Notes: generated by a model from the sequence alone, not told the origin. A stretch of 64,000 nucleotides of DNA from Anthoceros angustus (GCA_010909165.1 VJWM01000255.1:1-64000), one strand, 5' to 3'. Shown: positions 1-24,603, counted from the first letter of the stretch. Numbers and translations are program-made.

Positions 1-422
1 TTGCACAATTTACAACCACATCTACAACAAACATGGTTTACAACGCCTTTTACAAGTACCGCTTTACAACATCCTTTATGCCACGTCATTATAAATTCAA
101 CAAAATGTAGTTTTATTAACAAATAACCCCCATAGTTTTCTAAATCAAAAGAGTTTATGCACAATTAACAACGTCATGTACAACGAGCAAGCCATGTCAA
201 CAAACCCCGCTAGTGTGTCAACATGCCATGTCAACAAATCTTGTAAAATTGTGTCAACATGCCATGTCAACAAACCCTTGTAAAATCCATGCCACATCAT
301 ATTAGTTAGGAACCCTTGTTGTAAATGTTCAAAAACTTACGTGGCTTTGAGTCAGTAAGAGTGTTGTAGTTTCCTCTAACTAAACTTAGACCCATTTGTA
401 AAGGTAGCCCCTCCTTGTAGTG
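1..422. mobile_element. Right end of a CACTA/EnSpm DNA transposon
   Basis: Ends in ...CTTGTAGTG at 414-422 (reverse complement CACTACAAG). AT-rich subterminal region with many TTTACAAC/GTCAACA motifs, as in the CACTA ends at 44427 and 46392. Confidence 0.75.
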
Positions 423-429
423 TGCATCA

Positions 430-2960
430 TCTTATGCATCATGACCATCCTCTTGCCGCCCTCGGTTGCACTTTGACTCCGGGTTGAATAAAGCCTCGCA
501 ATTAACTTATCTTTTATGGCCTTCTTATCCACATACAAATGTTTCCGAGAAAGCTGAACCCATAATAGAGGATGACTGCTTGGTGAACAAAAACTTGTTG
601 GATATTCTTGATGGATAGCCTTCGCCCCTCTCCCGAGTTGCTCCAGTGCTTGCCATCCCTCCGATTAAATATTCTTCCACGTACCTCCCTTCATACGCAT
701 CCGTGTGTTCGTACCAATGAACAAGGAAGTGAGGCTCGGTGCATGTAGTTCAACACAAGTCACCTTCCAATCCAAAAGGGTCTATTTTGCGTGTCCGTGC
801 GGAAGGCAACTAACATTCCTCTTTATTTATGCGATATCACCATTCAACCGTGACATTCTTGTTGTTGCCTCCCATTTTGGTATGCTCCCAAATACATATC
901 TCGCTAGGGCTCCTCAAGAATGCCTCCTCCAGAGTGCTTCATCCGAACATGCAGAGGTTGTACCTTCCACTTCGAGTACCACCTCCAAGGTTTGTGTAGC
1001 ACAAGGCCAATGTTGTTTTCCACAATAAGAATCTCCTCTGGTCCACCCAAAGCTTCCCACCATAAAACTCCTTGATGTCACAGGCCTAAGTTCAAGACCC
1101 CTTTAGATGAGCAACGGCAGCTTGGAGATAATATCATGTGGCTTCCTTTTTATCCCTCGACCGCAGCGGTCAAGGGCGCATTATAGTGTCCAAGGCACAA
1201 ATTTCAAAACTCCAAACCCCTTCGCTTCCCATCGAGGAGGTGCTGCTCGATAACGCTCAAACCCACCGCTTTCACGTGTTATTTTAAACTGGAACGATAG
1301 GTTGTTCGCTTTCTTACCGCCCATAATGAGTCCTCTCGGCCTTGTGTAATGGGCCACACATATGAAGTCGCCACATCAATAATACCTTGACCGTGTAGGA
1401 GTGTACGCTTGCAAGATCTCGACAATGCGGAAGCGTGTGAGCTTCTTTATGTTTCAAGCTTTTGGAGAAGCAAGAAAACATCCGGTCGATTTGATCATGA
1501 GTATGCCCGACCAAAAGGAATCCCACTTTCACTTTTTCAAAAGTACCCATATCAACAAGCATGTTCGGAAGCAAAAGCTGGTTCTTATTCTCCCGCATGT
1601 GTTGTCCAACCGCAAATACAAAACTCTTGGCAGACACCCTCGTAATTATGTATAACGTCCCGAATAATGGTGATCGTAAGATTCGCGTCGTTCGAAATTC
1701 GCATAATGCAAATAGGCTCTAGCTTTAAGCGTATAGTTGTGAATCATGCACCCAACCACGTGGATGAATATCACCTCCTCACGAGGTTTTTCGCCACCGG
1801 AGAAGATGAGGTATCTCTGTCTTTTTGGTCCATTCCATCAATTGATAGCAGATATACTTATGTGGCTCCACATAGCTCTTGCTCCGTGTTTAGCCATTTT
1901 CGCTGCCTCGGTGGAGCCGCACACGATGTGCTTCCAAGGCAACTGAATTTCTCTCGTGCCAAAACGAACATCATAATCAGAAAATAGACCCCCATCTCAC
2001 CCATCCTGACACTTTGCAGAGAACCATCCAACCTATACAAAAGCTTTTTGAAGACGCCTTACCAATCATCCATGCAATGGCGGGTGGCCGCCGCCTTCCC
2101 TTTTCGCCACGGATGATTTGGGAGGGGTCTCCGAATCATCATCAGCTCAGCAGCGCCGGCGCCCCCTCTCTCTGAGATGGGAGATTTATCCGGCCAGAAG
2201 AGGGCGCCGGCTGCCGCGCCCAGCTGTGGGGAAACCCAATCCATGGTAAGTATTGGGCAAAGCACATGCATCGATTATGACAAGAAGACACAAGAGGGTA
2301 CATCCGGTGATGATAGGCATTCAACAAGGAGGAACAAGCACATGAAGGACACATTGGTGCAATTTACCTTGATCTTGCTTGTGCTTTGTATTTCTTATAG
2401 TGCTCTTCAGGCCTGCGCAAAGCGAGCATGTTGAAAATCTGTTGGACTTCGGGATTTTTACTCTGGGGAAGTTGCTTCTCCACAATTTTAAGAAACATGG
2501 ATACTTCACATAGCGTATGCTAGAGCTTTCGCACTGACGCTTGTACAAGGCCCATATTTCCAACTTTGTATACGTGTCGGGTAGATTAAATACTTCCAAA
2601 TTAGGAAGCCGCCGCCATAAACATAAAAGCATTGTCCATCCAAGAAATGGCATCAAGCGATAAGTAGATTGTGCCTTCGGGTTTGGTCCGAATCCATCCC
2701 AAGGTGATTCCAAAAGACTCGCTTTAGCTCCTCATACCTCTTGTGCCCAAGGCAATACACTCTTTGAAAGCCTTCAAGCGGCATAAGAGTCGCTCCCATG
2801 AGATATGTGTGACCGCTTTCCTTCTATCACCGCACTCCATCCGATCAACAAGAGATCAAGAAATGTCTCTGCCTCGCCTCCCATCCGAAGAAAGTATCGC
2901 GCTCTGAAATCGCTCTTTGGTCACCAAGAAACACATGTTGTTGCAACAAGGCTTCTTGAA
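430..2960 (-). pseudogene. Degenerate Sola-like DDD transposase (GHTH-x-x-ID type)
   Basis: Minus-strand segments joined across frameshifts: LPDTYTKLEIWALYK...FLKLWRSNFPRVKIPKSNRFSTCSLC (CxxC, ~2410-2590), DGMDQ-KTEIPH (~1810-1845), LPRVLYLRLDNTCG-ENKN (~1575-1635), FLLVGHTHDQIDRMFS (~1473-1525), and C-terminal PFWIGR...LVHWYEHTDAYEGRYVEEY (~665-790). Confidence 0.7.
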
Positions 2961-4319
2961 ATGCAAGCATTGTCTCCCTTCACTTTTGTCAACGACACTC
3001 ACGCGTCCCGCATGATAGAGTATTTGCGGTTGTCGGGGCCTTCAAAGTCTCACTTAGAGGCGGATGGAAGGATTGAGGCATCGTCCGGAAGTGGAGGAAT
3101 CGCCGTCCCCCAATGGGCCCTTCATCATCCGGAGTGGAGGCGAGCAACAATATCCTCATGAAACAAACCACGGGAACCATGGGTCTCCCGGGGAAGGTCA
3201 CGACATTGGGAAGTGAGAACGCGTTTGGATGGGCTTCCTCCAAAGATAGCGATGCAAATTCCTAGGTGTTGAGGAACACCGCGGACATTTGGCGACAAAT
3301 GTCGACGTTTCTCTGCCGCAAGAGCAATGTCCGAATAGTCAACGGGATCACACCATATGGATTTTCAAACCGCCCATCATCCAATTATAATCAAGGAAGA
3401 AATCTAACCTTCATCATCTACGTCTTCGCAATGGCAAAATGCACGACGGCGGCGATGTGATGTGGCGGCCTGCATGACTAGCCTCTTCCCTTCTCTTGTT
3501 TTCGGAAGCACGGACATTGGGAAGGCAAGTGTTGATCCCAAAGATGATCGATAGCCGATGAACCCAATCGAAAACAACTAAACTTAGAATCCTAAAACAA
3601 ACCCGAAGGAAAGGAAATCAAGAAAAAGAACTCAAACCTCTCCTTCCGGTGTGGGTGAGGCGCAACATTGTATGCCCTGCGCTCGTAAGAACCTTGATTG
3701 AGAGCGCCGCCGTCATGGGAGAGGCGAGGGAAGGCGAGAGACCTTGTGGAGAATGGTCAAGGAAGGTTGCGAATGGCGGTTGTGTGCCTTGAAGGCATAT
3801 CGCAAAGATAGGAAGGACATTATTTTCCGTCTACGACATCATGATGGACTATCGAGAGGTATCCAACTGGATCGCGCCGTCATGCCTTTTATGGTCGACA
3901 ATTATGGTGCACCACCAAGTCAATGTGATTATGGATAGACAGAGTTTATATTAGGGCATAGCGAAATATGGTAACGAGGTATTTAAGCACGTTTTGGTCT
4001 ATAAATGCGGGGCAAGGGAACCCTAATTACAACCTCTTTCTCTTGCCGGCGGTGGGGCGCCAGGGGCGATTTCAGAGAAGTAACGAGGCGAGAGCATACG
4101 GCGGTGTTGCTGGCGAGTTGGAGCACAATTGTGCTTGAATTCCACGCTCCCTTCGCCACGCGAGAGAATTCAGCCGGGCGACGAGCTTTGTGAGGCGGAA
4201 GCCATCGATCCATCGGCGCATGAACAGTTCGGCCCTCTCAGTGATCGAGTAACACCTTCCATTTCTCTTTGCGCAGACAGTTGACGCCGCGCCTCGCCGG
4301 GCTTGCTGGTTTGCAATTG

Positions 4320-6742
4320 AAGATGGCGAGCGGGAGGCGGAGCAAGAAGGACTGGCAGAGGCGGGCCGACCCCCAGCGCCGCGCCGAACGCGTAAAAGGC
4401 GAACAAGGCGAAGCGCGGCACGCAAGAAGTTCGGGAGGCCCACCGCGCCGAGTGCATGGCAACTGAGCGACTGCACATCCGGAGGTGTGGAGGGCATAAA
4501 GCATCGGGGAGACAAAATCTGGGAGCATGTCTTCGGGAAGACAAGCCAACAAAGGCCGCGCGCAAGGGCCGGGAAGGAGGCACCAAAAGTTCAAAGCATG
4601 TGGTGCCACCTCCAATTCCATCACCTTTCAGCTACGAGGAAACCGTGCACATCCGCATCGGGTGGCCGATTGACCTGATTTTTAAGGATTGGATGCTCGT
4701 CCAGATCCGCATCCGTAAGAGGAAAAGCAGATGGACGCCTTGTCAAACTCGGATAATGGGGTAGTGGGGGCTTTGCCCAATCAAAAGAGCAAGAGCCGGA
4801 TGGGTAACTGGGCAACAATGGATATGAATGAGGGGAGCCGAGTTCACGTTGTTTTGCACCACTGTGCCATATGAGTTTGACGCGATCCGGACCCGATATT
4901 TACAGGTGTCTTATGTTCTCCGAGGGTTCAATGCCAAGAAATGTGCACCTCGCTCACTAGTCAAGAGTTCCGCGAGTGCATGCGCCAACACAGTAAGTTG
5001 GAACAAACAACGCCTTTTTTCAAAACCATGAGACTTGGATGATCGACGATTTCGCTGCTTTCCCACCGTTAGTCGGAATGGCCCTCATCGGGCTATTTGC
5101 GGAAGATTACGAGACGTTGTGGATCACAGGAGAGAGCTTTCAATGAGAAGGGTGAGAGCACCCATCAAAGAATTGCGAAGAGGCAGAGAGTCCGAGCCCC
5201 ATCCCGAAAGTGAACTTGGGCCCTCGATGAGGAAGATGGCCCCATTCCGACGTGCTCGGGCATTCGGAGGAAGAAGTGTCCGGGGGAGGGAAGACGAGAT
5301 GCTGCCAAGCTGGCATTGCATGGGCCAATGGTTGTCCCAACCATGGCCTACATCAGGAGCAGGCGGGCCGGCCGCCTGTGTGTGTGTTGAAGGGTGGAGC
5401 GAACTGAACTTGCTTTATCCAACAAGGAGATGCGCCGCCGGCCCCGGAAGAGCTTCACATGCCCTTCCACCGGACCGCAGTGGAAGAATAGTTGTTGGAT
5501 CCCGAGAGGGAAGAGGGTGGTGTGGAGGCGGGTTGAGCAGATGAAGAAGGAGGAGGCGCCGGGCCGGCGCCTCTTGAGTGCGGAGATCATGACACCAAGG
5601 TCGGTTCATGGGAAAGCGCCCGCAATTTGGATTCCATAGGCCACATAGTGGCGGCACGGAGGCGGAGGAAGGAAGAAATGGCAAAGAGGACCAGTTGGAG
5701 ATTCCATCGGCATATTTCGACAGATGAAGAACGTAGAAGACGCGATCGGGATGCACCCCTCTCGCCTCGAGGGATTCACCACGAAGAAGGTTGGTCTGGA
5801 AAAGTGTTGGTCAAATTGGAGAACTTAAGACACCGCACATAACACGGGATGCGATTCGCAGGGGGTTGATGAGGCATGGGCCAATTATTTGGCTCGGGTT
5901 ATTTCAAGGGAGGATAGAGGAGGGTATTGCCACCTTATGTATGATAGATCCAAGTGAGTGCACCTCGCAAGTCGGATCGGAAGCGGCGGCGAAAAATACG
6001 TTATGGGGTTCTTGGTGGAACCATACTTATGCACCATGAAACATCTATGTGATATCTCACCAGGGAAGAAGAGGTTCCAATATGTGGAAGCACATGTCTA
6101 TTGTGGGCTTACTGTACCAGAAATGCGAGTGCTGGCCACGGATCACAATACCATGTCGGACAAAAGGAAGAAGATGAACTTCATAGAGCAGGTCCGGTAC
6201 TTGCGAGATGAGCTGCTGATTGCGAAACGCGAAGGAGTACAGATGACCATGGCATGGAAGTAAAATCTGTACAAAGTGCTGGGATTGATTGAGGATGATG
6301 AAGGGCGCGAAGACGATGTCCACAAGCAGAACAAAGTAGACAATCGCACACACATTTTATGCATCGCCAAGGTGAGGGAAGGTGTGGGACAATGTGGACT
6401 TGATTTTTCAAAGTGGGAGGTCGGAGAGCAATGTAAGAAGCATTTACCAGGGATAAGCAAGAAAGGAAAGGGAAGCGGAAGGTGGCCGAATAAGTGGACA
6501 TGATACGTAAAGCCAAGGACATGTTGGCAAAGCCATGGAAATCCTTCCAAGGAATACCACCGAGAGTGCGGGCAGAAATTCGTCAGAATGTAAAAGTTTT
6601 AATCGGACTTATTGATTTGAAGGGCATGGATGAGGAGATCACTTTGCGGAAGAAGTTCCATGTCATACAAGTTATGGCGGTAAAACACCGGGTGCTCATC
6701 ATTCGAGGAGGTGCGAAGAATATCCGCTGCCGGCTGCACTGA
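4320..6742 (+). pseudogene. Large frameshifted ORF with a ParB/Srx-like domain
   Basis: Reconstruction across 1-nt indels at ~6001-6150 gives YGVLGG-NHT-LCTMKHL...FQYVEAHVYCGLTVPEMRVLATDHN, resembling the ParB G-x-H motif and following strand-helix. Protein-like segments extend upstream to ~4320. The ORF is cut at 6743 by an LTR. Confidence 0.5.
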
Positions 6743-7808
6743 TGTTGTCCCGCTTTCAAACCGCTTTTGGCCGGGAAAGGTTAGTTTGCCCCATGTGTTC
6801 GGGATTTGCGGCCACGCCCTCGCCCTCTGTGGAATGAAGAATTTTGGTCACCCAAGACCCTAAGGGGGGACCGACGCGAGGATGGGTAGTGTCGCTCGGG
6901 TAGGTAGGTAGTAGGTAGGTCGATAGAGATGTAGGAAGATGGTAGGACGTCCGAGGGAGTTCGGACTTAATCGAGTCTGCATCGTAGGAGGTTCGATCTG
7001 GTAGGAAGTATGGGTAGATAGGAGCATATATAGGCATGATAGGTTCCAGAAATTCCTTGGACCTTGGGAAATAGGAATATTCGGGGATAAGAAGTTCCTT
7101 GGCCTTCGAATTATTTAGATTCCGCATGGCTATATATGCCAAATAGGGCTGGTTAGGTTGTAAATAGAAAATAGCTGCAGGAGTTTTGAACCGGACATGT
7201 GGCGACCATCAGGGAGGAGCGCCATTAAGGCGGATTTGCATGTACCGCAAACTCGTTAGCTGTGGTTTGAACGGGCGCCAGCGTGACTCAGTGATGGCGC
7301 GCAAAGGGGAGAGTAAGAGGAGCTTACGCCGAAGGAAGCAGAGTGCGGGCGACGCGATTGCAAGCAGGAGCGAATCGAGAGGGAGCAGCGCGAAGGCGCC
7401 ACAAGGAAGAGCAAGAGGCGACGCATCAGTGAGTGCCGGGCGAGAAGCTGAAGAGGAGTTCGGAGGGTCCAGGCGCGAAGTGGAGGTGCTCAAGCGGAGG
7501 AGCGATTGTTGGAGAGGCGCTGAAGGGAAGAGCTTGCTACCGCGAACAAAGTGTGAAGAAGCTGGAGGGAGATTGAAGGGGCCAAGGCCACCTCTTGGTG
7601 GTTGTGTTGAGGCCGACTGCTGAGGAGCACGGAAGCCCCTTGCTGCTCACCCAAACCACCACTTTTGCTCACCACTCTCTTAGCCCGATAGAGACCACTT
7701 CTCACACAATCCTTCATCGTCAAGGGATTGAGACCGAGCATGATGCTTTCCGCTTTCACTATCTTTGTTTGAATTGAAGGGGATATGGTGGGATCTAAGG
7801 TTTCAACA
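6743..7808. mobile_element. LTR (~1.07 kb)
   Basis: Termini TGTTG...CAACA; internally homologous to 8391-9230; no matching TSD seen. Confidence 0.6.
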
Positions 7809-8390
7809 GCAGGTCGAGGTGTGGTGATTCCACCGCTGGGATGTCTCAGTATATCCTTTGACTCACACCCCCGGCCCTATTGGGAGTTGGGCTTCTTGTT
7901 GACGGAATTGTAATGAAGAAGCGTTATCCTTGCTGCGGAACCGGCGGTGATGCAGATCCGGCAAGGATGCGGGAAGTGGTGCCTCAAGTCACCGCCCATC
8001 GCAATGAGGAAATTTCAGTTCGAGCACGAGATCCAATGCATACCGAGGTCGGACGAGTTCAAGGGATGGAAGGAGTTTTGAGGCAAGAATTCGCCATTGC
8101 GCTTTTTGCATTTACCCGAGCATCGACATTGTTGTCGGCGACCCGGGAGGCCCGGGTGACATGGTCTCGAGTCCCTCACGAGTAAGAGATTGGTTGTCCA
8201 CATGCTAAGGGCATTGTGTGACTAATCGCTTGAGAAATTGAAGGGAGGCCCAGTGGTGGCAAAGTTTACTACAAGATGTGGTTCCAGTGCAAGTGATTTC
8301 ATGAAGACAAAGAACTTTGGCGGGAAGTTGGATTGAGGTGGCCAAGTCAGCGCTTCATGTCTAGATGTGAGCATCGACCAAGAGGAAGGC

Positions 8391-9340
8391 ATTTTGGTCA
8401 CCCGCAATTGGCAGGGAGACCGACGGTAGATTGGGTAGTAGTTGTTCAGTGTAGGTAGTAGGTAGGTCGATGAAACAGTAGGAAGATGGTAGGACGTCCG
8501 AGGGAGTTCGGACTTAATCGTGCTGCACTGAGGAGGTCTGATCCTAGAAGTATGGGTAGATAGGAGCATATATAGGCATGATAGGTTCCAGAAAGTTCCT
8601 TGGACCACAGGAAATAGGAATATTCGGGACAGAAGTTCCTTGGCCTTGAATTATTTAGATTCCGCATGGCTATATATGCCAAATAGGGCTAGTTAAGTTG
8701 TAAATAGAAAATAGCTGTGAGTTTTGAACCGGACATGTGGCGACCATCGGGAGGCGCAATTAAGCGGTTGCATGTACCGCAAACTCGTTAGCTGTGGTTT
8801 GAACGGGCGCCAGCGGTGCAGCCGGGCGGGCGCCGAGGGGAGAGTGTTGCTCAAGGAGGAAGGCAGTGAGCGCCTCGCCGATTGGCGCAGTTGGAGGGAG
8901 CGCAACAAGGCGCCGAGGGCGCACGAGGCGAGCGCCGAGCGATAAGGAGCAGCGGGCGAGGCGTAGAGCTCAGGGCGTGAGCGCAAGGAGAAACGCTGAG
9001 AGGAGTGGAGGGTCCGCAAGTGCGAGTGGAGGTGCTCAAGCGGAGGAGGCGATTGTTGGAGAGGCGCAAGAGCCGCCAGCGTGAGACAAGGGTAGCCTGG
9101 AGGGAGATTGAAGGGGCCAAGGCCACCTCGGTGGTGTGAGGCTGACCGTTGAGGAGCACGGAAGTTTTCCCCTTGCTCACCCAAACCACCACTTCTTTGC
9201 TCACCACTCTCTTAGCACGATAGATTACTCTCCAATCTCTCCAATCTTGCTATCCTTGTGTGCTCCCCGCAGTGCGGATGGTGAAGGTAGTAGGATAGGA
9301 ACGGGGTACTCCCACGGGAGGAAACCTCCGCCACACCCCA
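8391..9340. mobile_element. Second, diverged copy of the same LTR-like sequence
   Basis: Shares long blocks with 6840-7700 (e.g. GTAGGAAGATGGTAGGACGTCCGAGGGAGTTCGGACTTAATCG; TTATTTAGATTCCGCATGGCTATATATGCCAAATAGGGCT); the ends differ. Confidence 0.6.
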
Positions 9341-9399
9341 CAAGGGAAAGGGAAGAAACACCCAATTCCGAGTTCGAGTGTAGGCGCTCCAAATTTCAC

Positions 9400-11880
9400 C
9401 TCGAGATTTGAGGCGCCTCGAGCGCCACGCGCCCGAGATGAAGATGGAATGGTACTTGGTGCACAGGTGGCACTTGCGAGCCACCTTGGTTCGTGGAGTG
9501 TGCGCGATTTAATGAGAGTGACCAAGGCGGACGGCCAATTCGAGGATCTGACGGTCAAAGTCATCACAGGATGTGGAAGGTACGGCATTTCCGTGGATAC
9601 GACGATAAGCCCACAAGGGAGGGATCATTCCGCAGCTCAGCCTCCAAGAATCGGATCCGGAGGAGGTTATGGGTATGTTCCTCGACCAAGGAGGAAGTAT
9701 GGTCGCAAGGCAATGGTGGAGGATCTCTTTGTTCAAGGAGGCGGAAGTGGAATTTATTCGCCAAGATATGGCTAGGACTAACGTGCGCAAGGAAGACGAC
9801 TGGAAATTCCCATTTAATGATGATGTATGAGATGTCGAGGAAGTTGGTGGATTGGGCCACCATTCTCAGATGAACAAAGGGTTGCGCACCGAAACCATTT
9901 GGTGATGGAGGGAGCAAGAATCGGTTTGTCTCTACCTTCCTCGTACACCTATATCGGAGGAGGAGGTTCTTACACCGAGCCGGAAGAAGCCAAGATAAAG
10001 CTACTGAGGGTAGTGGAAGGAGAGCCACCGGGCCCTGCAGAGGATGAAGAGACAGAGGCCCGGGCAAGAGACCACCACGCGAATCAACATGAGGCCTCGG
10101 GATCGGGAACCCAACAAGAGAAAGGGAAAGGCCATAGAAGCACCTCCTACGGAGGAAGGAGGAAAGGATCTGAGACCACCTACGGAGGAAGAGATTGATG
10201 GTAGGAGTGACAAATCGGGCCGGGTGGGGAGGAACCCCTACGGTGGGACCCGGGGAGGATGGAGGACCTACGGTGGGAGCTTTACCTCCTACCAAGAAGT
10301 AGTAACAAGACTTGAGGCAGTGACGGAGAAGAACGCCGAGGCGTTGGTGACCTACGCACCAGGAGGAGCAGAGGAAGTGTTTGAGAATGCCGCATCCCAC
10401 AGGGTAGTTGCCGAGCAAGGAAGTGGGCGCGGATCTATGGACGCCCTAGTGGACCGTGGTCGGAGGTGGCCGAGTTCGTCTGAACTTGAGACCTCTGAAG
10501 GAGGCGGAAGGAGGGAACCTCCTAGAAGCGATTGAGGAGCTCAAAACCACCTCAGAAGCAACACTCCGTGCTAGATCCGCCAAAGAGCGACAGATGACCA
10601 CCAAGTTGGTGAATGTGTGGGAAATGATTGACTGTGTCTTAGGGTGAGAGGCAAAATCAGCCAAGAGGGCCGAGGAGTTGGAAGCTACCTAGCAAGGGTA
10701 GGAGGCGTATGAAAGTTGGAAGCTACCTAGCAAGGGTAGGAGGCATCGAGCCTTGAGGAGGCGGAAGGAGGAAGATCACGCCTAGCCCCGGACCTTGAAG
10801 GCAGAAGGACCTCCTCGAAGAAGTTAGTTGCCATGGAGCAGCGGAAGGAGCATTACAAGGAAAATATACGCTTGGTGAAGGAACGACAAGGATGGGACAA
10901 TGTGACCAAGGGTCACAAAGAGGAGCTTCAGACACGAGAGAACTTTTGGAGCAAAGAACGAAGAAGTTAGTTGCCATGGAGCAGCGGAAGGAGGGAACCT
11001 CCTACCACGGTGGAAGGAGGCGGAAGGAGGCGGAAGGAAGTTTTGATGGCCCAACGATCTTTGGAGGGTCTTGGTCATTCGAGGAGGCGGTGCGGCCATA
11101 GTAAAGCGCATGGCGATGGAAGCCATGGAGAAGATAAGGAGATTGGGAGACTTGCCACAGGTTGGAGAGAGTGGAGAAAGAGGCCGCATTGGTAGGAGTG
11201 ACAAAGCCGGTGGGACGAAAAGGCCATCCCACTAAGGGTCCGCATCATGGGCGCACAAAGAAGGAGAGTGGTAGGGTGGCGACCTATTACAACAACCTCC
11301 TAGAAGCGATTGAGGAGGAGACCCGGAAGGAGGAAGAAAGAAAGACCTCACTCGACGCCTGGGAATGGCACCGAGGTCAAACTTTGAGTTGGTACAAGGA
11401 AAGCAGCCGGCCGGGACATAGCCGAGCGAGTCAAGAAGCACCTCCTACCACGGTGGAAGGAGGGAACCTCCTACCACGGTGGAGCTAGGGGAGGAAGAGA
11501 TTGATGGTAGGATGGTACCTACCAAAGTTCCTACTCAGGTAGGAACTGTTGATGAGGAGGAGGAGACCCGGAAGGAGGGGAACCTCCGGTCGATGAAACC
11601 CAGGCTGTGAGGGAAGGAACCCCCATAGCGAGATCTGAAACCGTGGTAGGAGACGAACCGCCTACCAAGAAGGCGAGAAGGAGGCGGAGGCAAGGCTAAG
11701 CGACCCATCGAGGATGAACGTAGGAGGAATGGAACCTCCTACCACGGTGGAAGGAGGGAACCTCCTACCACGGTGGAAGGAGGCGGAAGGAGGCGATGGA
11801 AGCCATGGAGAAGGACTCGGAGGAGGCAAGGCTAAGCGACCCATCGAAGGGAAGACATTGAAGTCGAGTAACAAAAGCAG
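9400..11880 (+). mobile_element. Degenerate retroelement-associated ORF (coiled-coil, with internal repeats)
   Basis: Fragmented purine-rich ORFs with recurring units PPTTVEGGNLLPRWKEAEG and AGTTAGTTGCCATGGAGCAGCGGAAGGAG; lies between LTR-like sequences; no RT or integrase motifs recognised. Confidence 0.4.
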
Positions 11881-12045
11881 AACGAGGATGTCAGAGGACC
11901 TTTCAAGAGGACGTTTTGTCCCAAGTGGTGCACACCTTGGGAAGTGTGAGTATTTAAGAGTGGCAGATAGATGATAGGATATTCCGGTCAAGGTGAGCTG
12001 GACCGAGCTGAGAGGATGAACTGCAAGGGGACTGACAAGGATCCT

Positions 12046-12255
12046 ATTGTTGGACTTGGCAAGTCGCCCTAGCATTAAACTAGCACGAGTGACCAGTCGA
12101 CTCCCCCACCTATAAAAGGGAGGGTGGAAGGATGAATAAACACCAGACCTTGCTTTGCCATGCACTCTTCGTCTCTTCGGCGCAACCCTTTGTGTGTGTG
12201 TGCGAATGACTCGCGTGATAGAAGGCGGGGTGGGGTTCGGTCGGAGGCCCTGTGG
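12046..12255 (+). mobile_element. LTR-like segment interrupted by the TIR element at 12256; probably continues at 14955-15371
   Basis: Starts TGTTGG and contains CTATAAAAG and AATAAA; the putative continuation ends ...CATAACA at 15371. Confidence 0.4.
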
Positions 12256-13245
12256 AACACGATAATTTTGCAAGGGGAATATAGGCGGGGTTTACCGCTT
12301 TATCCTTTGAAGAGGGTTTGATGGGTCTAAAACTAGCCTCGTCATGGCATGCTCTAAAAATTTATCACAAAATCATGGTGTCACACCATTGGTTGCATTG
12401 TTTTCATGATGAGGCATGTGAAGGGTTTAGGCTTTCCACAACACATCGATTTCGGCATAATTGAACCCACGTGGTTGACCATTCTTGGCGGTGTTACGCA
12501 CATAAATATTGCCTTTCAACTAAGGCACTATGTAAAACACCAAAAGAAGACCCGAGTAGTCGTTTGTATACTACACTTTGGGCATATGAGGAGGGGGCGC
12601 GCCCCGGGCCTTTCCCCGCATACCTCCCGAGAGTTTGGGGTTTAGGTCAAAGTTCGGTCGTCGTTCTCACTTCCCACGGACAATGTCCTTCGCGTATGTG
12701 ATAGAGTATACGACGACATCGGATTCCAGATTGATATGCAAATGGAACCCTCTTCAGCAAGCACCTTCATTCTGATTTTTTTACAGCCGCCCACATGGTT
12801 GTCACTAGCAACCGAATGCCGCAAGCCCTTGTCACAAGGTCATGTTTCCATTTGCATTCCACTACATCAGTCCAGGGTGGGGCAAGCGCGAAGTCCTTCA
12901 AAGCAAATGACCGCCCTCTGTGGGGAACACAAAGGCCTTGTACTTCATGCACACTATTTCAATACCATACCAGTTAACCAAATCAGGAGCTGTTGCTTTA
13001 AAATATTTTTAAAATATATAGAGTAAGTGGGATTAGTTCCCCTCAAAACCACGGCCCAAACCTCAAAGTAATGTTATGTTCCACATTTTGGCGGGTACCT
13101 GAACATGCCCATATATTCTTGAGAACGGTTGCACATTGTACTGATGAATTAATGAAAGTAAGTTCATAGGTTTTTCAAAATGGGTGCAATCGTGGCATGA
13201 GAGAAGAATTTCAAAATACATCCATAAAGAGGATGCCGGCTGGCC

Positions 13246-13390
13246 GGCGCCCTCCCCATGCATGCCCTCCCCATGGGCGCGCGGCGCCCTCCCCATGCAT
13301 GCCCTCCCCATGGGCGCCGGCCTGGCGCCCTCCCCATGCACGCCCTCCCCATCGGCCGGCGCGCCTCCCCATGCACGCCCTCCCCATGGG
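13246..13390. repeat. GC-rich tandem array, ~35-37 bp unit GGCGCCCTCCCCATGCATGCCCTCCCCATG x~4
   Basis: Directly visible; related motifs recur at 14741, 16897 and 17335-17530. Confidence 0.85.
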
Positions 13391-13719
13391 CTGCCTTTGA
13401 TAAAATAAATAATTAGCGGTTCAAATGATTTGTGGCTTGGGGTGGTTACTCAAGTGGTTGGATAGAGTTTAGTAAGTAGTAGTCGTGAGGTCAAAACCTC
13501 TACTCCACACACAACTTTGTTGATTTTAAGGGCATCCTTTAAATTAAAGGATTCTGTCCTTAAGGACGCATTCACGAGTCCTTATTTTGGCCAGCATAGT
13601 TAAGAATTTGTAGTTTTAAACCCAAAATCATAGCAAATATCTTTCAATCGTTGATCGCGAGTTTGAAATTACTCGTAATATTATATTAATGGTCTCAAAT
13701 TATAAAAGAATCAAAATGG

Positions 13720-14174
13720 TGAAGAGAGCTACGGCTCACTCAAGTTTCTTCCATTTTATGGAGCTCATTGAAGGCGCGACCATTGTATTGAGGTCATAGC
13801 TCCTGGCATGCATCACGGACACCATCTTTGCGATCGACCAAGGCTGTACATTGTGATTTGACATGTGAAAGATGTCATATTTTGCTCATTCAATTTGAAA
13901 CATACATTCAAATGGTTGAGGGAATGTGTTACTTGTTTGATAAAGGCAATGATTCAAACCCGTGAAAGCCAAAACCGGCGACGTGAACCTCGTAAACCAA
14001 AAGCGGCATAGGTACGCCACACGCTTACGCAAGTGCTTGATGAGGCGGGAGTTGGGAGAAGCAGCCAAGTCCATGGGCAAGAACAATGGTTTTGATGACC
14101 CAGAAGTGGAGCGCATGTGGAACTTAGAAGTGGTCATACATTCAGTGTTGGCTCAAGGCCCGTATGAGTTCTGA
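13720..14174 (+). pseudogene. C-terminal remnant of the MTase gene (copy B) inside the TIR element
   Basis: KAKTGD...KSMGKNNGFDDPEVERMWNLEVVIHS aligns with copy C KTKTGA...RAMGENDSFDEEEVERLRNLAIVMDS and copy D KEKTGD...EAYEERLRNMTLVPDS. Confidence 0.7.
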
Positions 14175-15371
14175 TTGGTCCCCATGAGGACCATTCCGCG
14201 TAACGCTTGCATGTGCTCGTTTTAAAGTTTACCGTTTTGTCCCAGTCGTTGTGGGCGCCGCCATGTCGGCGTTCACACACAACTTCGGTTTTGTTTCTTT
14301 CCAAAGTATAACCATGTTTAGTTTTGATATGAATTTATTGAATGGTGTCCATGAACACATCACGGGGCTGGCGGCGGCGCCTAGATAGGCTCTCTATCAT
14401 GTCAATGGAAAGAATGCGAGACTTTTCGATTGTGGATGGAATAAAGAGGCTAATGTCATTTTGAAGACCTAGGGTTTAAATCCTCTTTTAAGGAATGTCA
14501 ATTTCACGAAGGGATCTTCCATAATTATGGTGTTGGTGCGAATCGTAATTTAGCAATGGTGTTGGATTGATTATCCGCTCAGCCTGGATGAGTCTGGCCC
14601 GTCATATTCCTCCATTCTAAAGTAGAGACTCAAAACATTGGATTGACGGTGAAAGATCCATTTTTTTTGTGGTATAGATAGTCCACCAGTAGTTCCCCAC
14701 AAAATAGCACAAGGCTTGAGTGTTGTGATAGACCTGTTAGGGCGCCAGCCGGCCGGCGCCCTGATGGGTCATTGTAGTGGAGGCAACTGGTAAACATTTG
14801 ATGTGTAAGTGTATGTACCCCAGGAATGGAGGTGATGTTTTTAACCTGACGTAAAAAGGCTATTTTTGGACTGGGCAGTGTTTGGTCAAGAGGGTCCGAC
14901 CCCAGAAGAAGAGGGTTTGTATATTCCCCCCCTTGCAAAATTATCGTGTTGTGGGTTCGCTCGACGCAGGCTCCTCCTCTCGTGAAAGATTGCTGTTGAA
15001 TGTACTTTGTGTTGCTGTTGGTTGGCCTCCTGCAGGGTGACTGGCGCTCGACTACGCTCGCGTCAGGTGTTTGTACACGGCAATTGGCCCGAGAGAAATA
15101 CCGATTAGCCGTCAGAGCGGTTGTCGCAAGGAGGCGTAAGCTGGCCGAACGGTAGAGTTAGATTTGGGATCGTATGAAGTGAGTTTGTATGTGGTGATTT
15201 GTGAACTGTGTTTCTTTTGAGAATGGTGAAGCGGTTGGGTATGGATGTGTCGTTGTAGATCGAGTTGAACGTTGTAGTTGGCATAGGAGAGTGTTGGGGT
15301 GGCTAAGAAGTAGGAAATCCTGGAAGGCGTGGAGCGGCGCCGTGGGCCAGGCAACCCAGAACCGCATAACA

Positions 15372-16758
15372 CCCGTTTGTTGCCCATACTGAGGACAAGT
15401 AGACCGGGGCGGGATGATGAGAGCGAGAGAGTGAGAGGAACGACTCGCAAACAGTCCGAACCAAATCTCTTGGGATCGAACCTACGTATTCAACGACCGT
15501 GGGATAAGTGTGGCCACCGAGGCGAGCTCCGGGTGACCGAGGCAAACCTACCACATCTCTGTTCTTTTGCGGTTTGGACTAACAATCATGTGTTTGGCAG
15601 CAACTGAAGGATATTGAGGTCCTTTCCAAACTTCCAGACGTCTTCCAACATTTGATTTTTGAAGTTAATAATTGGAAGGGACTGGAGGACGAGCAGCGTG
15701 CTCTGGCGGACAAGGACCTTGAGGAAGGATTGGATGTCTTCAATGTGCCATCCTCGGAAAAGCAAGTACAATAGCAAGTGGAAAGCAGAGATGTCTTAGA
15801 CATGCGAGGATTTCTGAGAGGACGGAAGTACACACTTCTGGTGATGGACGTTCCAAGGGGGTTTCAAATTGGGCCCTTGGACAAACGAGTTGACAAGCAG
15901 ATGATGGACCTTTTGCGAGCTTTTGGAGAAAACTACTCGGATGAGTTGAGAATGATTGTCATGCATGGTGTGGAGGAGGCTCACACCGTGAGGGAGTCAA
16001 TGCGAAAGTGGAGCAAGAAAGGGGCTTGGTCTCATTTGTATGGGACAAGACCAACATGAACAATAGCGGTGGGTTGAAGCGTGGAATATGTCACGGTGGG
16101 GTGGGGCATGAAAGATGGGTTCAGGGGATAGAGTTCCAATGATGCCTAATGCCATGCCACACTTTCAACAATGGGAGGTCTGTGATCGCACACGATACGG
16201 TTGTGAAAAGCAGTGTACATGTCCCAAGACAATGGTGGTTTGCCCATACGAGGCCTCGGGCTTATGATGAAACTTATCGAACCTTCTTGCGAGAGGGATT
16301 GGATTTTGGATGTATGCTCGGGAGTGGGACAACGTTATTGGCTTCCCTACTATGCGGAATTGTATTCTTTGTTGGGCGACTTGAGGTGTGCGGGATACAT
16401 TCCACAGTTCTTGGGCATGAGGTTACGATCTTGAAGAAGAGGCGGCGTTTGGCGCCCACCGCAGGACTTGCGATTCAGGCAAAGGAGGTGTGTATCGGTG
16501 AAGGACTCCTGGCCAGTTGTTTCCTTAAACGCAAGGCGGCTGAAGACCAAAACTGGTGCCCTTTTGGCAGAGGGACAACAAACTTTGGATAGTGTTTGGC
16601 AGCCTTCCACGACCCCTGACGACGACGCCACAGGAGTACAGGAAGACACAAGGGCGATGGGGGAGAACGATAGCTTCGATGAAGAGGAAGTGGAGCGCTT
16701 GCGAAATCTGGCTATTGTGATGGATTCGGAGTTTTCTCTACCCCCTGGCGAGTCCTAA
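15372..16758 (+). pseudogene. Beta-class N4/N6 DNA amino-methyltransferase, frameshifted (copy C)
   Basis: YTLLVMDVPRG (motif IV position) precedes LGLMMKLIE...WILDVCS-GSGTTLLASLLCG (motifs X and I); homologous along its length to 17495-18811; one in-frame stop and several 1-nt indels. Confidence 0.8.
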
Positions 16759-16889
16759 GTTAGCCCTAGGGAATAGGCTTAGTGTTCTCATATCATGTGC
16801 ATCTGCTGCATCGTTTAGATCGCAATCTTTTATGGACCCGTTGCATTGAGGCAATTGATGTCTTCAGTTTTGCTTGTTCCAAAGAAACA

Positions 16890-17104
16890 ATGAAAAGGCG
16901 CCGTCCGGGCGGCGCCCTCTCGCCATTTTGATGTCTTTGTTGCGCGAATATGGTTTTTCTCAATACCAACGTGTTGGAACATGGTCGACCTTTCTTTAAA
17001 AAGAGCTAAAACGCATATTTCGGGACTGTGTGTAATGTGCTAAGAGGGTTTTCATTTCACGGAAGGGGGTTCGGATATTCACCCCCTTCACAAGATATCA
17101 TGTT
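16890..17104. mobile_element. Diverged right terminus of the same TIR family
   Basis: 17075-17104 matches 14921-14950 at 23/30 ungapped positions. A GGACTG...AAGAGGGT block ends 55 bp from the terminus in both. A GGCGCC...GGCGCCC motif lies 207 vs 209 bp from the terminus. Confidence 0.7.
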
Positions 17105-17334
17105 TATTGCACAAGAAATTGCATATCATCCAGGTTGCCATGGCAAAGCACTTAGGGTGTTCATCCTTTGAGATGGTGAGACAAGAGTACCCACAACATT
17201 CCACAAACGAAGTTGTCGCATGGTTCCAGATTGCATTCGAAGGAAAGGTAATTCGTTTTTTATACTGACAAGTTTCATTGGAATTGTAGGTCGCGGACAG
17301 AGGGAGGGGGAGCAAACCATTCTCATGGAGAAGC

Positions 17335-17530
17335 GTCGGCATGCCGGCGCCCCTCCATGAGGATGGTTAGTCGGCAAAAGGGCGCCGTCATGCCGGCGCC
17401 CTCCCCCTAGTCTAGGGGAGGGCACCGCATGACCGCCTGCTCGACCTCATAGGTCGGGGCGCCGGCATGCCGCGGCTCCCCCAGCCTCGCTGAGGTGCAC
17501 AATGAAATGAGGGCGTCGGCATGCCGGCGT
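17335..17530. repeat. GC-rich array of GGCATGCCGGCGCCC/CTCCCC motifs
   Basis: Repeated GCATGCCGGCG and GGCGCCC motifs, related to 13246-13390. Confidence 0.7.
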
Positions 17531-18811
17531 CCTCCCTTCCCCATAGAGTCATTCCTGACACCCAATGTATTTTCTGTGCACCAACACAAAGACATTGAAG
17601 TCCTCACCAAGTGCTCTGAAAACTTTCAACAGTTTATTTATGAGGTGAACACATGGAAGGGCTTGGAGGATGAGCAACGAGAGCTCACAGATAGGGACAT
17701 AGAGGAGGGATTGCTGCAATTCACTATCCCACAATCGAAGAAAAAAGTGCAGTATCAAATTCATGCAAGAGATGTCCAGGATATGCGAGGATTTGTGAGA
17801 AAAAGGAGGTACTCTTTGCTTGTAATGGATGTGCTACGTGGGTTCGACAAAGGCCCTAAGGATGGAAGGTTTGATGCTTGGCAAGTGGGTAATATTTTGC
17901 ATTCCTTCCATGACTTAACTGAATGCGATCAGTTTAGGGTGATCATAATGCATGGTGTGGAAGATTCACATATTGTGCGGGAGCCTATGCGAAAGTGGTG
18001 CCAGAGGGGTGGGCTTGTTTCATTTGTGTGGGACAAGACAAATGTCAACAACAACAAGGGTGGGTTCGATACTATCGAGTACGTCACTGTTGGTTGGGGT
18101 GTGAAGAAAAGCTCTCAGTTGCAGCGGGCAGTCATGTTACGTAATGCTTTGCAAGTCACTTTCAATAATGGTCGGTCAGTGATTGCCCACAACACTGTTG
18201 TGAAAAAGCTGGTATACCATTCACTTGACAAACTTGTTGTCTGCCCCTACCAGTGGCCTCTAGGTTTGATGATGAAGCTCATCAAGACATTCTCCAAGGA
18301 AAGGGAATGGATATTGGATGCATGTACAGGTAGTGAGACATCTTTCATGGCTGCCTTGTTGTCTTGCTGCAATTGTATTTCTATCGAGGCAGACAAGAGA
18401 TGTGCAGAATTCATTCCACAACTTGTACATGGGTATGAAGTACTGCACGATGCGGAGGAGGAGCTGACGCACGAGCCGCATCGTCGAGGTCCATCTCCAT
18501 TTTGGTCTAAGGAGGTTTGCGTGAGCGAAAAGGATATTGGGAAGGCTCAAATTGTGCCCCTAGGGTCGAAGAGAATGAAAGAAAAGACTGGAGACCCTCT
18601 GGATGAGGGACAACAGACACTAGACGGTGTTTGGCACTCAACCTCTGAAATTGACGGGAAGGACTACGATGACGCCCAGGCAATGATGGATGTTGACACT
18701 TCCAGAGAGGCATACGAAGAACGTCTTAGAAACATGACCTTGGTTCCCGATAGTGTAGCCGGATTGTGTGTAGTTGAATCTCAGGTCCCCCAAGACCCTG
18801 AACTTCCTTAG
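17495..18811 (+). CDS. Beta-class N4/N6 DNA amino-methyltransferase-like ORF (copy D), 438 aa uninterrupted, probably 5'-truncated
   Basis: YSLLVMDVLRG ... FVWDKTN ... IEYVTVGW ... CPYQWPLGLMMKLIKTFSKEREWILDACTGSETSFMAALLSCCNCISIEADKRCAEFI follows the N6_N4_Mtase pattern (HPTQKP-x-LL-xx-LI...GD-x-VLDPF-x-GSGTT-xx-AA....IGIE). Homology to copy C starts at ~17550. Confidence 0.85.
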   Translation: MHNEMRASACRRPPFPIESFLTPNVFSVHQHKDIEVLTKCSENFQQFIYEVNTWKGLEDEQRELTDRDIEEGLLQFTIPQSKKKVQYQIHARDVQDMRGFVRKRRYSLLVMDVLRGFDKGPKDGRFDAWQVGNILHSFHDLTECDQFRVIIMHGVEDSHIVREPMRKWCQRGGLVSFVWDKTNVNNNKGGFDTIEYVTVGWGVKKSSQLQRAVMLRNALQVTFNNGRSVIAHNTVVKKLVYHSLDKLVVCPYQWPLGLMMKLIKTFSKEREWILDACTGSETSFMAALLSCCNCISIEADKRCAEFIPQLVHGYEVLHDAEEELTHEPHRRGPSPFWSKEVCVSEKDIGKAQIVPLGSKRMKEKTGDPLDEGQQTLDGVWHSTSEIDGKDYDDAQAMMDVDTSREAYEERLRNMTLVPDSVAGLCVVESQVPQDPELP

Positions 18812-21466: not shown

Positions 21467-23650
21467 ATGACTGCAGCAAGAGATGGGCCTGCGTGGCCTA
21501 CCGATCAAGAGCTTTTGGCGGAAATTGAAGCTGTCAGCGAGGACTCAGCGGCGGTCCAACACCAAGTGTTGCGAGTCATCTTAGAGAGGCATGGCTCCTG
21601 CCATTACCTGCAAAAACTGGGCTTGGATGAGAGAACTACACTGGAGGCTTTCAAAGCCAGAGTGCCACTTTCTACGGCTGCAGACTATTTACAAGATTTT
21701 GAGAAGCTTTTGGACGGGAACAGGGAGCCTCTTCTCTGCTGCTCCCTTCCTATTGCATTTGTCAGAAGGTGCGATCAGCTGAGCTTGTTCAATTGCAAAA
21801 GACTTTTTGTCAAAGCTTCATTGCCACTGCTGCGTGGATTTGGGCCATTCCTGACTGCTCCTTCTTCTTGTGCAGTTCCGGGACTTCTGCTGGTATAACG
21901 AAGTACTTTCCAGTGACAAGGGAATCCGCTGACGGTCTTCTACTCACGTATCCAAGAGCAATTACACGAAGGTACGTGGTAGTAGCTGGACCAGGTCATC
22001 ACCTACATCGTTCTGCACTGCAGAACGCTGCTGCAGAATGTGCAGGCTGTAAGATTGTCTGCCTGCACTACTTATAACGTTGTGAGCCTGTTGGATGTCC
22101 AGCTGCTTCCCCAGCAAACTGCCTCCTGGAGTAGGGAAGGCTGGTATAGTCGTCACTGCAGGAAAGAGACAAGACACCAAAAGTGGTGCCAAGGCCAGCA
22201 CACTCGTAACAAGACAACTGGATACCAAGGAATTCGAGTACTTCCACACGCACGTAGCTCAAATTGCAAGCCCGATAGAAGTACTGCGAGCTGAGGATAC
22301 CCAGCAAGCGATGTATGGTCATCTCCTTTGTCTACTGGCTCAATCCGATGTTGTCGAAAGCATTGAGTCCGTTTTTGCGTACTCGATGGTGGAGCTGTTC
22401 CGATCTCTTGAGGCATGGTGGCCAAGCCTGTGTCATGACATCAAGACAGCAGATGTGAACAAAAACATCGTTACCGATTCTGTGATCAGAGAAGCAATCT
22501 TGTCAACGGTGAGTAGTAGAGTACCCTGTGATGTCCGCAGAGTGAAAATCCTTTACACGAGTCTTGATGGTTCAGGAGACGGCGTCACAGCCTACACCCC
22601 TGACTTGCAAGTTGGTCAAACTGCCAGGTGTTGTCAAAGCCCCTTCCAGAAATCGCACACCGGATTCAGCAGGAGTTCGGGGAGGGACAACGGAATGGAA
22701 TTGTTCTGCGCCTTTTCCCCAACCTCCAGTACCTAGTTTGTATCAGTACGGGTCCCATGAAACCATTCTCTCCTGTTCTTGATCGGTACACTAGCACGTA
22801 TTTCCCAAAGTTGGCACTTGGGTACGGCTCCTCTGAAGCGGGCCATTGCGCCTTCCCTCTGAAAAAGACTCTCCATGATCCTGAATCCTTTTCCTTCTGG
22901 CCAAAGTTCGCCTTCTACGAGTTTCTTCCAGAAACACGGGATGAAGCGAGGGCAGCCGAATTGGCAGGAGCAGCGGAGAATCTTGAGGAGCAGGAGCCTG
23001 TGGAGTTGACAGAAGTGAAGCTGGGCCAAAAGTATGAGCTTCTTCTCACCACTCCAGCAGGACTGTACCGTTACCGCACAGAGGACATCCTCCAGGTGAT
23101 AGACTTCCACAAATCGCTCCCGGTCTTCAAGTTCGTCTGCCGCAAAGGAGTGATGCTGAGCATCAACACCGATAAGACTGACGAAGCCGAGCTGCAGAAT
23201 GTGGTGCACAAGGCCACTGGAAGGCTGGAACAAGGGCTAGATGTCTTTCTCTCAAACTATTCCAGCTTTGCTGACCATTCCACTACTCCTGGCCACTATG
23301 TCATCTACTGGGAGCTGGAAAACGCACTAGCGGAAAGCCCTCCCGATGCAGAGCAAGTTTTGCAGGAATGCTGTGACCTACTGGATTCCTCGCTCAACGA
23401 ACCCTACCGACGAGGACGAAAAAACGGATCCATCGGCCCTCTGGAGCTCAAACTCGTCACGCAGGGAACATTCACCAACTTGAGAAACTATGCTGTGCAG
23501 CGAGGTTCTAATCTGTCACAGTACAAGACTCCTCGCTGCGTGGTTAACCCCGCCCTGTCAGAAATCCTGAACGAAGGAACAGAGCACTCTTTTCGAAGCT
23601 CCTTCACAGCTTGGGAGCCTATTCAGAATGTAGGCCTAAAGACCTTCTGA
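21467..23650 (+). CDS. GH3: GH3 family acyl-acid amido synthetase, 4 exons
   Basis: SSGTSAG, YGSSE and GLYRYRTEDI motifs; C-terminal PGHYVIYWE...YRRGR..GSIGPLELKLV..GTF...QYKTPRCV; GT-AG introns near 21770, 21970 and 22510. Confidence 0.95.
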
Positions 23651-24087
23651 TGGCACCAGTCTCTGCAACTGTCAAAATTACACAACATCTGACAATTCCA
23701 ACCCTGCTTATTTGTCCTGACACAGACACAGACTCTCTTCCGGCATTACTCCCAACGTACACAGTTTTCGTCCTTACGTGTCTTGGAATCCATTTTTTTG
23801 TTGCTGCATCTATGAATTGTTCTATGCATCAAGATTCTTGTCTTGGAATTACTCGATGATTGTCATAAAAAAGACTCTTGTCTTGGAATGCTGCCTCACG
23901 CGCTGAGCCATGGCCAACGCAACTGCTCGTATTACCGATGAGGAGCAAAACGCATGGAAGCCAGGGATGTCATCACGAGTACAGCTGAACGAGAACTTGA
24001 ACATTGAGAAAGGACGGTGATGGAGGATGCGTACCCAATAATTTACCCTAGAACACGAGTTTGAAAGCAACATCCTCGGGCGGGACA

Positions 24088-24603
24088 CTAAACCTGCATG
24101 TTCCGGGCCAGAGCAAAACATTCAGCAGTCAAGCGAACTCGTTCTGCGGCCGTTCTGAGGCGGTCGGCCGCTTCACCATCGGCAAATTCGTCGTCCAGGG
24201 CTTGCCGCTTTGCGAACTCAGCCGAGACTGCCATATCCAGGTTCTTGAGCCTCTGATCAGCATCCACGCCGTTCAGGTACTTGATGCGGTCCTCAGCTGC
24301 CAGAATCCGGTTCTTCAAGCTGCGCAGCTCAGCCTGGCGCTCTGATTGTCGGAAAGCTTCCAGAGCTTCTCCCATGAGCTGAACGAACGACTCTCCCCAG
24401 GCGTGCGCCGACTTGAGCTCCTCATACGACACCTCCTTGTCGCACGCCTTGAGCTGGGCAGAGAATTCCGCCAGTTGCAAAGGATCTGCGGCCGCGCTTG
24501 TAGGCGACTGCGGTCCTACCTTCCCCTTCACCTCGTCACTGCAGATCTCCAGCAGCCTGGAAAACCTCTCCTTCCAGCGCCTATCTTCTTCCACGGTACT
24601 CAT
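24088..24603 (-). CDS. Uncharacterised coiled-coil protein (core exon; gene may extend both ways)
   Basis: 171-aa ORF with helical composition; possible downstream exon after a GT..AG intron near 24090-24050; no family recognised. Confidence 0.5.
   Translation of the reverse strand: MSTVEEDRRWKERFSRLLEICSDEVKGKVGPQSPTSAAADPLQLAEFSAQLKACDKEVSYEELKSAHAWGESFVQLMGEALEAFRQSERQAELRSLKNRILAAEDRIKYLNGVDADQRLKNLDMAVSAEFAKRQALDDEFADGEAADRLRTAAERVRLTAECFALARNMQV

Follow-up and report, generated by a model that had tools for sequence, protein, structure and literature searches.

The closest described relative of the system reported here is Sola1-1_Ec32, a giant Sola-1 element of 21.5 kb from Ectocarpus, in which a 1104-aa protein with ParB and N4C/N6A methyltransferase (MTase) parts is encoded opposite the transposase (PMC12477816, Genome Biol 2025). 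Its authors suggest that this accessory protein binds and modifies its own element, and they cite precedents from green and red algae (PMC12477816). Self-binding and self-modification have also been proposed for accessory genes of the giant Plavaka/EnSpm elements of Bostrychia moritziana, where PAG2 and PAG3 have a ParB-like N-terminal domain and tandem arrays of inverted repeats adjoin the gene (bioRxiv 10.1101/2025.02.11.637652). Fusions of ParB and helix-turn-helix domains to Dam-type MTases are known from chlorophytes and chytrids, and MTases linked to ParB and terminase from phages (Iyer et al. 2016, PMC4738411). Here we describe the remains of a transposon family with ParB-like and MTase genes in a stretch of 64,000 nucleotides from Anthoceros angustus (GCA_010909165.1, VJWM01000255.1:1-64000). 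This whole stretch, which is land-plant nuclear DNA with a G+C content of about 50% throughout, is called the window below.

At 1-18.8 kb, the window holds the remains of three or more copies of a single family of cut-and-paste transposons with terminal inverted repeats (TIRs; Table 1). Identity and architecture taken together, the full-length form of the family most probably consists of two divergent units, a DUF7869 (Sola-like) transposase gene against a unit for a ParB-like domain and a beta-class MTase, in which the ParB-like domain is followed, after a gap or intron of 300-400 bp, by a phage-type N6_N4_Mtase domain. The first copy in the window probably comprises the head-to-head transposase and ParB remnants, continued after some 8.6 kb of inserted DNA by copy 2, an MTase pseudogene, together with the right terminus at 17104. 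The second, element A, is an internally deleted, non-autonomous derivative of 2.7 kb which itself lies inside the inserted DNA. The third is 5'-truncated, with only the palindrome-bearing spacer between ParB and MTase and an MTase open reading frame (ORF) left. None of the copies appears to be autonomous, and we regard all of them as relics.

Table 1. Features located in the window, with positions counted from its first nucleotide.
Feature	Position	Strand	Evidence or remark
Decayed DUF7869 (Sola-like) transposase gene	763..2608	-	Pfam, collinear tblastn
ParB-like ORF remnant, frameshifted, first gene or exon of the ParB-MTase unit	~5815..6742	+	HMM, tblastn
Intervening unclassified repeat-rich DNA, ~8.6 kb, contains element A	6743..15387		Approximate boundaries
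Element A, non-autonomous deletion derivative, 2.7 kb	12256..14950	+	Perfect 22-bp TIRs, 4-bp TSD
Palindrome copies in element A (n=4)	13231, 13312, 14253, 14740		Pattern search
C-terminal MTase-tail remnant in element A	14058..14168	+	tblastn with copy-2 tail
MTase copy 2, pseudogene with stops and frameshifts	15598..16755	+	tblastn against open ORF, family HMM
Palindrome copy between copy 2 and its terminus	16896		Pattern search
Right terminus of copy-2 element, AACATGATATCTTGTGAAGGGG	17083..17104	-	Homologous to element A TIR
Four palindrome copies within ~200 bp, just upstream of and overlapping the open ORF start	17331..17532	+	Pattern search
Open 438-codon ORF, beta-class amino-MTase fold, without ParB part	17495..18811	+	Pfam, AF2, Foldseek
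GH3 fragment (C-terminal half)	22628-23650	+	Ordinary plant gene beside transposon cluster
812-aa PLS/E-motif PPR protein	37258-39696	+	Ordinary plant gene
PALP-enzyme ORF	58253-59143	-	Ordinary plant gene
(HMM, hidden Markov model; TSD, target site duplication; AF2, AlphaFold model)

Element A is a bona fide transposed unit. Its perfect TIRs (AACACGATAATTTTGCAAGGGG at 12256-12277, inverted at 14929-14950) are flanked by the TSD GTGG at 12252-12255 and 14951-14954, in agreement with the matching TIRs and 4-bp duplication of the original prediction. Three matches of the TIR pattern were found in the window, against 0.00 expected. The right ends at 14950 and 17104 are collinear over their last 43 bp and over a 45-bp stretch within the MTase tail (14073-14117 matching 16657-16701), as had been claimed when these two ends were called homologous, with MTase sequence just inside. 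The 3' tail of the MTase ORF thus lies directly inside homologous right termini of two elements, which ties the MTase gene to the transposon. In translation, the remnant in element A matches the C-terminal tail of copy 2 over 37 aa (43% identity, tblastn E 2e-7); a catalytic MTase domain was not found by the family HMM in 12256-14950. Of three MTase copies originally proposed, the open ORF and copy 2 therefore stand, and the one placed at 13720-14174 is real but small, with only the remnant listed in Table 1 matching. The left part of element A showed no similarity to positions 1-4400 of the window. Four tandem units of 35-41 bp (GGCGCCCTCCCCATGCATGCCCTCCCCATGG-like) are present at 13237-13396 inside the element, overlapping its palindrome copies.

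On the transposase remnant, Pfam DUF7869 was matched at 1317-1718 of the minus strand (E 3e-20). Four collinear tblastn pieces, running from 2608 to 763, correspond to residues 215-726 of the intact DUF7869 transposase (869 aa) encoded at locus L002, the last piece (927-763) being weak (E 0.64). A minus-strand remnant at 430-2960 had been proposed; the span supported by these matches is the shorter one of Table 1, and the wider limits are plausible as outer bounds. Transposases of the DUF7869 family are abundant in Riccia and occur also in Ceratopteris, Adiantum, Chara and many marine animals. No mention of DUF7869 was found in the literature searched, and a link to Sola is suggested by analogy, through the TSD length and the matching accessory gene in Sola1-1_Ec32. 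The Sola traits found are the TIRs and 4-bp TSD of element A and a ParB-MTase accessory gene opposite the transposase.

The ParB-like remnant lies head-to-head with the transposase remnant, as described in the original prediction, where it was given as a plus-strand ORF at 4320-6742. The part recognised begins at about 5815, with 5815-6036 assigned by eye only and matches by HMM and tblastn further on, and Pfam gave no match, ParB or other, on ten stop-to-stop pieces of 4253-6739. A profile of the N-terminal domain of the MTase fusions matched 6039-6329 (E 3e-16), with a weak match at 6392-6565 and none elsewhere in the window, and tblastn with P0049-P0051 matched the ORF at E 1e-11. Positions 6039-6218 are matched by the N-terminal regions of three MTase homologs, P0006 (Ginkgo Gb_37443), P0015 and P0033, and the tail of the window ORF aligns with the natural end of the ParB ORFs in L001 and P0049. 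It was also considered that the end of the ParB ORF (6494-6742) might overlap the MTase start, the ParB ORF and copy 2 then being separate genes. This was rejected because a Trp motif ends the ParB ORF of L001 and a second, different one starts its MTase ORF. Protein P0015 (1825 aa) has two tandem modules, with ParB-like parts at 165-219 and 1139-1195 and MTase parts at ~380-573 and ~1490-1708, and reflects either gene duplication or a merging of gene models.

The order that had been predicted for the autonomous element, TIR - transposase(-) - ParB...MTase(+) - TIR, fits the family and is seen at independent loci. Transposase, ParB and MTase co-occur, in the same divergent layout, at L009, L008 (Ceratopteris richardii CM035423.1) and L010 (Riccia sorocarpa CM100794.1). 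At L002 a transposase on the minus strand faces a ParB-like gene on the plus strand, at L003 and L004 ParB is followed by MTase exons, and at L007 and L001, the latter holding the closest relative of the window ORF, the ParB ORF is found 300-400 bp upstream of the MTase ORF. The accessory gene opposite the transposase is intact at L002, L008, L009 and L010, and in Ginkgo the gene models are ParB-MTase fusions. A 32-bp inverted repeat brackets the pair in Riccia, with ends starting AACAT like the window termini; the left flank is a run of N and no TSD can be read there.

Two of these loci showed further peculiarities. The Riccia element is located between two Ion_trans and EF-hand gene models (1-3804 and 24013-24286), which may be one channel gene split by the insertion or a tandem pair. 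Large 'inverted repeats' in a self-comparison of the Ceratopteris locus proved spurious, being only (TATC)n microsatellites: kilobase-long (TATC)n/(AGAT)n tracts surround the element in opposite orientation (13067-15792, 2516-3572 and 22075-22605).

With the ParB ORF ending 300-400 bp before the MTase ORF in the relatives, a large insertion from 6742 to about 15390 fits the spacing in the window. The original prediction had attributed the split, at 6743-15371, to insertions of long terminal repeat (LTR) elements. Inserted DNA is supported, and its LTR nature is unproven, because none of ten ORFs from the insert gave a Pfam match and the only pair of direct repeats of this kind (6865-7692 and 8414-9224, ~830 bp) is 79% identical. 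ACTGA is found at both 6738 and 15388, a possible 5-bp duplication that points only weakly to a TSD.

The only long open frame within 1-20 kb is the 438-aa ORF. It passed the Pfam cut-off for N6_N4_Mtase (PF01555) marginally, with 27.3 bits against 26.7, so that the original MTase assignment holds by this check. A word-index protein search with the ORF returned no relatives; an exhaustive HMMER search of 1.84 billion representatives yielded 46 at E <= 0.001, the best at 3e-29. N6_N4_Mtase is present in all ten homologs scanned by Pfam, with scores of up to 65.7 bits. Searched against PDB, a profile of eleven homologs matched DpnA/M1.HpyAVI (E 4e-13) and also CcrM, MboIIA, RsrI and an N4C MTase, and in PHROGs the Ginkgo homolog matched the phage MTase phrog_67 (E 7e-28). 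An AlphaFold (AF2) model of the ORF, built with a 35-row alignment, has a core at residues ~75-320 with a predicted local distance difference test score (pLDDT) above 90. Foldseek matches of this model are CcrM, MboIIA, TTHA0409, M.BceJIV, rotifer N4CMT (8s9o, E 3e-10), RsrI, PvuII and M1.HpyAVI, with E-values from 1e-12 to 1e-8. The beta order is permuted, motif IV (residues 112-117) being N-terminal to motif I (275-283), which binds S-adenosylmethionine (SAM). The predicted MTase fold is a firm assignment. Homology to the relatives begins at position 17578.

Copy 2 is 42% identical to the open ORF (tblastn E 5e-75) and was also recovered by the family HMM (E 8e-29); it ends 350 bp inside the terminus at 17104. 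DNA homology between the two copies begins at a CAG/CAA junction (TTTGGCAG/CAACTG), at 15590-15600 and 17570-17580 respectively. This copy-2 junction looks like a splice acceptor, and its counterpart in the open ORF reads GCAC. It is possible that the MTase part forms its own exon and that the acceptor is mutated in the open copy.

The catalytic motifs of the family are unusual. Its motif IV consensus is D-[ILFV]-P-Y-G-F (D-x-P-Y-G-F) and not the canonical (D/N/S)PP(Y/F/W/H), and in both window copies and their nearest relatives the aromatic residue is replaced by Arg (D-x-P-R-G-[FL]). The canonical motif IV is accordingly absent from the open ORF, which reads DVLRGF, and from copy 2, which reads DVPRGF. 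The open ORF further reads YQWP at the 'YQKP' motif and TGSETS (DACTGSETS) at motif I, where a Gly to Glu change departs from the SAM-binding pattern (F-x-G-x-G; in this family D-x-[CF]-x-G-S-G-T). In copy 2, GSGTT is kept at motif I in a shifted frame. Among 27 positions that are at least 80% conserved in the family, the open ORF departs at six, three of them effectively invariant: P114L in motif IV (P in 24/24 relatives), K254W in 'YQKP' (K in 32/32) and G281E in the SAM loop of motif I (G in 30/32). The first and last of these are private to the open ORF. K254W is common to copy 2 (frame-3 reading 'PRQWW') and therefore predates the split of the two window copies, which are sisters in the tree (support 100/100).

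Having lost the proline of motif IV, the invariant 'YQKP' Lys and a glycine of motif I, the open ORF is probably catalytically dead. An earlier suggestion held that the MTase may methylate its own DNA or its targets. For the copies in the window, in which catalytic and cofactor motifs are non-canonical or lost, self-methylation appears unlikely.

A palindrome, GGGCGCCG-N6-CGGCGCCC, was found ten times in the window with three mismatches or fewer (0.2 expected), and nine of the ten copies are in 13231-17532. Palindromes also accompany the family elsewhere. In Ceratopteris a different one of 23 bp, AAGTCGATGCCWGGCATCGACTT, forms an 11-copy array in the gap between ParB and MTase and a 13-copy array upstream of ParB. 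There are 14 palindrome copies between transposase and ParB at L002; at L004 a further, different palindrome is present 11 times upstream of ParB; and L009 and L010 have one or two copies. In their position relative to the genes, the arrays of the relatives correspond to the copies beside the open ORF. Element-specific palindromes beside the ParB gene are a trait of the family, and they are lineage-specific. It is these palindromes that the ParB-like domain would bind, and differences between lineages are what a recognition pair of the ParB/parS kind would predict.

A mechanism can be proposed for intact members on this basis. The ParB-like domain would bind the lineage-specific palindromes of its own element, beside its own gene, and so bring the fused or adjacent MTase onto the element's DNA, which the MTase would then mark with N6-methyladenine (6mA) or N4-methylcytosine (4mC). 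Such marking may time or license transposition, or affect silencing by the host. We put this scheme forward tentatively, as possible and somewhat short of probable. If it holds, MTases encoded by transposons would supply plant nuclei with 6mA or 4mC by a route separate from the 5-methylcytosine machinery of the host, which bears on the disputed amino-methylation of plants and on the ways in which DNA transposons control or conceal themselves.

Several observations weigh against this picture of the family. A left terminus of the large element was not found within the window, so that its TSD cannot be checked, and no right terminus is recognisable there downstream of the open ORF. For the 8.6-kb insert, neither its nature nor its precise boundaries are established. 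With a motif IV that is non-canonical throughout the family, even intact members may not be ordinary amino-MTases, and both binding and methylation are steps that we infer. The ParB-like domain itself was not matched by Pfam ParB_N in the family, where only sub-threshold DUF6551 matches were obtained in three of eight members (best E 0.0057). Searches of the N-terminal domain against PDB sequences (phmmer with P0006:110-330, and a profile) and PHROGs gave nothing, and its AF2 model is of low confidence (pLDDT 62).

Searches with this pLDDT-62 model nevertheless point to ParB. Nearly all of the top 20 Foldseek matches are Spo0J/ParB/Noc/KorB proteins (E 0.011-0.4, best probability 0.96), for which VIA-align gave Z 5.2-4.0, and eight of the ten rows of an Atlas shape search are ParB_N clusters (TM 0.31-0.39). 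In the Atlas feature search ParB_N (0.92) and DUF6551 (0.89) ranked below a fungal DUF3723 cluster (0.95). The domain has an invariant G-G-x-H-x-x-E-A-R-x-x-L in the family, a frameshifted stretch in the window, which we take to resemble the ParB box, a conserved G-x-x-R or Arg-rich segment following strand 3. On this predicted structure, the N-terminal domain is likely to be ParB-like.

As to the fate of the open ORF, a first alternative to a dead relic is that it is a stranded copy which the host or the transposon family has kept as a non-catalytic protein of MTase fold; it could then serve as a DNA-binding module or as the partner of an active paralog, like METTL14 and DNMT3L. In favour of retention, 438 codons are still open in the ORF whereas its sister copy 2 has many stops and frameshifts, the ORF sits on a short terminal branch of the tree (0.23; copy 2, 1.02), the model of its fold has high confidence, and the sharing of K254W with copy 2 indicates that the lineage persisted after losing that residue. 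A young pseudogene would, however, likewise still be open. The ORF directly adjoins other dead copies, and its first 28 codons, which overlap a palindrome and have neither homology nor a high pLDDT, look like read-through of a spacer or intron. We consider retention unlikely.

The same ORF could, less plausibly still, encode a working methyltransferase of DNA or RNA whose motifs are unusual (DVLRGF, YQWP and GSETS) and whose substrate may have changed. The whole fold is kept, as are 21 of the 27 highly conserved positions, and in the nearest clade (P0001-P0003) an Arg in motif IV goes together with other core residues that are kept, which makes a functional non-canonical motif IV conceivable. 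Against activity stand the Glu that replaces a motif I glycine in the SAM-binding loop and the loss of the motif IV proline and the invariant Lys. In class I MTases, each such loss of a core residue is expected on its own to damage cofactor binding or catalysis, and an active enzyme is improbable. A further alternative is that the MTase genes are cargo or host genes with no relation to the transposon, which in this genome alone came to lie close to its ends, either fortuitously or through Pack-type capture. In its favour, no copy in the window runs without interruption through transposase, ParB, MTase and both TIRs. It is nevertheless hardly credible: five independent loci, of which two belong to named land plants, have the same three parts together in the same order, and in two different window elements MTase-ORF sequence is preserved at corresponding positions with respect to homologous termini.

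The proposed mechanism and the retention of the open ORF can also be joined. A land-plant transposon lineage (ferns, liverworts, Ginkgo and this genome) would then have a ParB-like reader that co-evolves with its palindromes and an MTase that writes sequence-specific 6mA or 4mC on the element's own DNA, together with a clade with Arg in motif IV, including the open ORF, that is kept as non-catalytic or re-targeted. As a whole, this combined reading is doubtful.

Ordinary plant genes (GH3, PPR and PALP; Table 1) flank the transposon cluster, so the elements are situated in a gene-bearing region. An uninterrupted ORF of 499 aa for a DNA primase small subunit was found at 29245-30744 on the minus strand (Pfam DNA_primase_S, E 7e-51, full domain), and a 433-aa ORF overlaps it on the opposite strand. 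An intronless primase is unusual for a plant nuclear gene, and it could be a retrocopy or part of another mobile element or viral insertion.

Compared with proteins of the same fold, the family is set apart by its motifs and its context. The prokaryotic and phage beta-class MTases (CcrM, M.MboIIA, M.RsrI, M.PvuII, M1.HpyAVI and phrog_67) have motif IV before motif I and the association with ParB in common with it; the window family differs from them in a motif IV of D-x-P-Y-G-F or D-x-P-R-G-[FL], in its location in a nuclear transposon, and in its introns or gaps. Marchantia MpDN4MT1a/b and the N4CMT of bdelloid rotifers are likewise bacterial-type amino-MTase folds in eukaryotic nuclei. In the part of the published record available for them, MpDN4MT1 is described as a host gene with a canonical TSPPY motif and spermatid expression, and neither a ParB domain nor a transposon context is described for MpDN4MT1 or N4CMT; the motifs of the window family differ from theirs. 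A relation to Marchantia DN4MT1 was set aside on account of its canonical TSPPY motif.

Among transposons, the Plavaka elements belong to another transposase superfamily. Their ParB-like domain is fused to a 2-oxoglutarate (2OG)-dioxygenase and not to an MTase, and their N6A methylase, which has a SET domain, is encoded as a protein of its own. The 4-bp TSD of element A agrees in length with that reported for Sola2 (PMC3627910). Sola1-1_Ec32 resembles the window family in having its accessory gene transcribed opposite the transposase. It differs, in a comparison by description only, in its brown-algal host and its single 1104-aa fusion, whereas the window copies are decayed and have a non-canonical motif IV. 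With this architecture already published for Ectocarpus (PMC12477816), the claim of a new system in the original prediction does not hold, and the window is a land-plant instance of a recently published kind of element; no description of the transposase/ParB-MTase design in land plants was found in the literature searched. To a design so far published only for algae, the window adds evidence from a land plant, a clean derivative with TIRs and TSD that ties the MTase gene to a mobile unit, and an example of an open ORF with an MTase fold whose core catalytic residues are lost.

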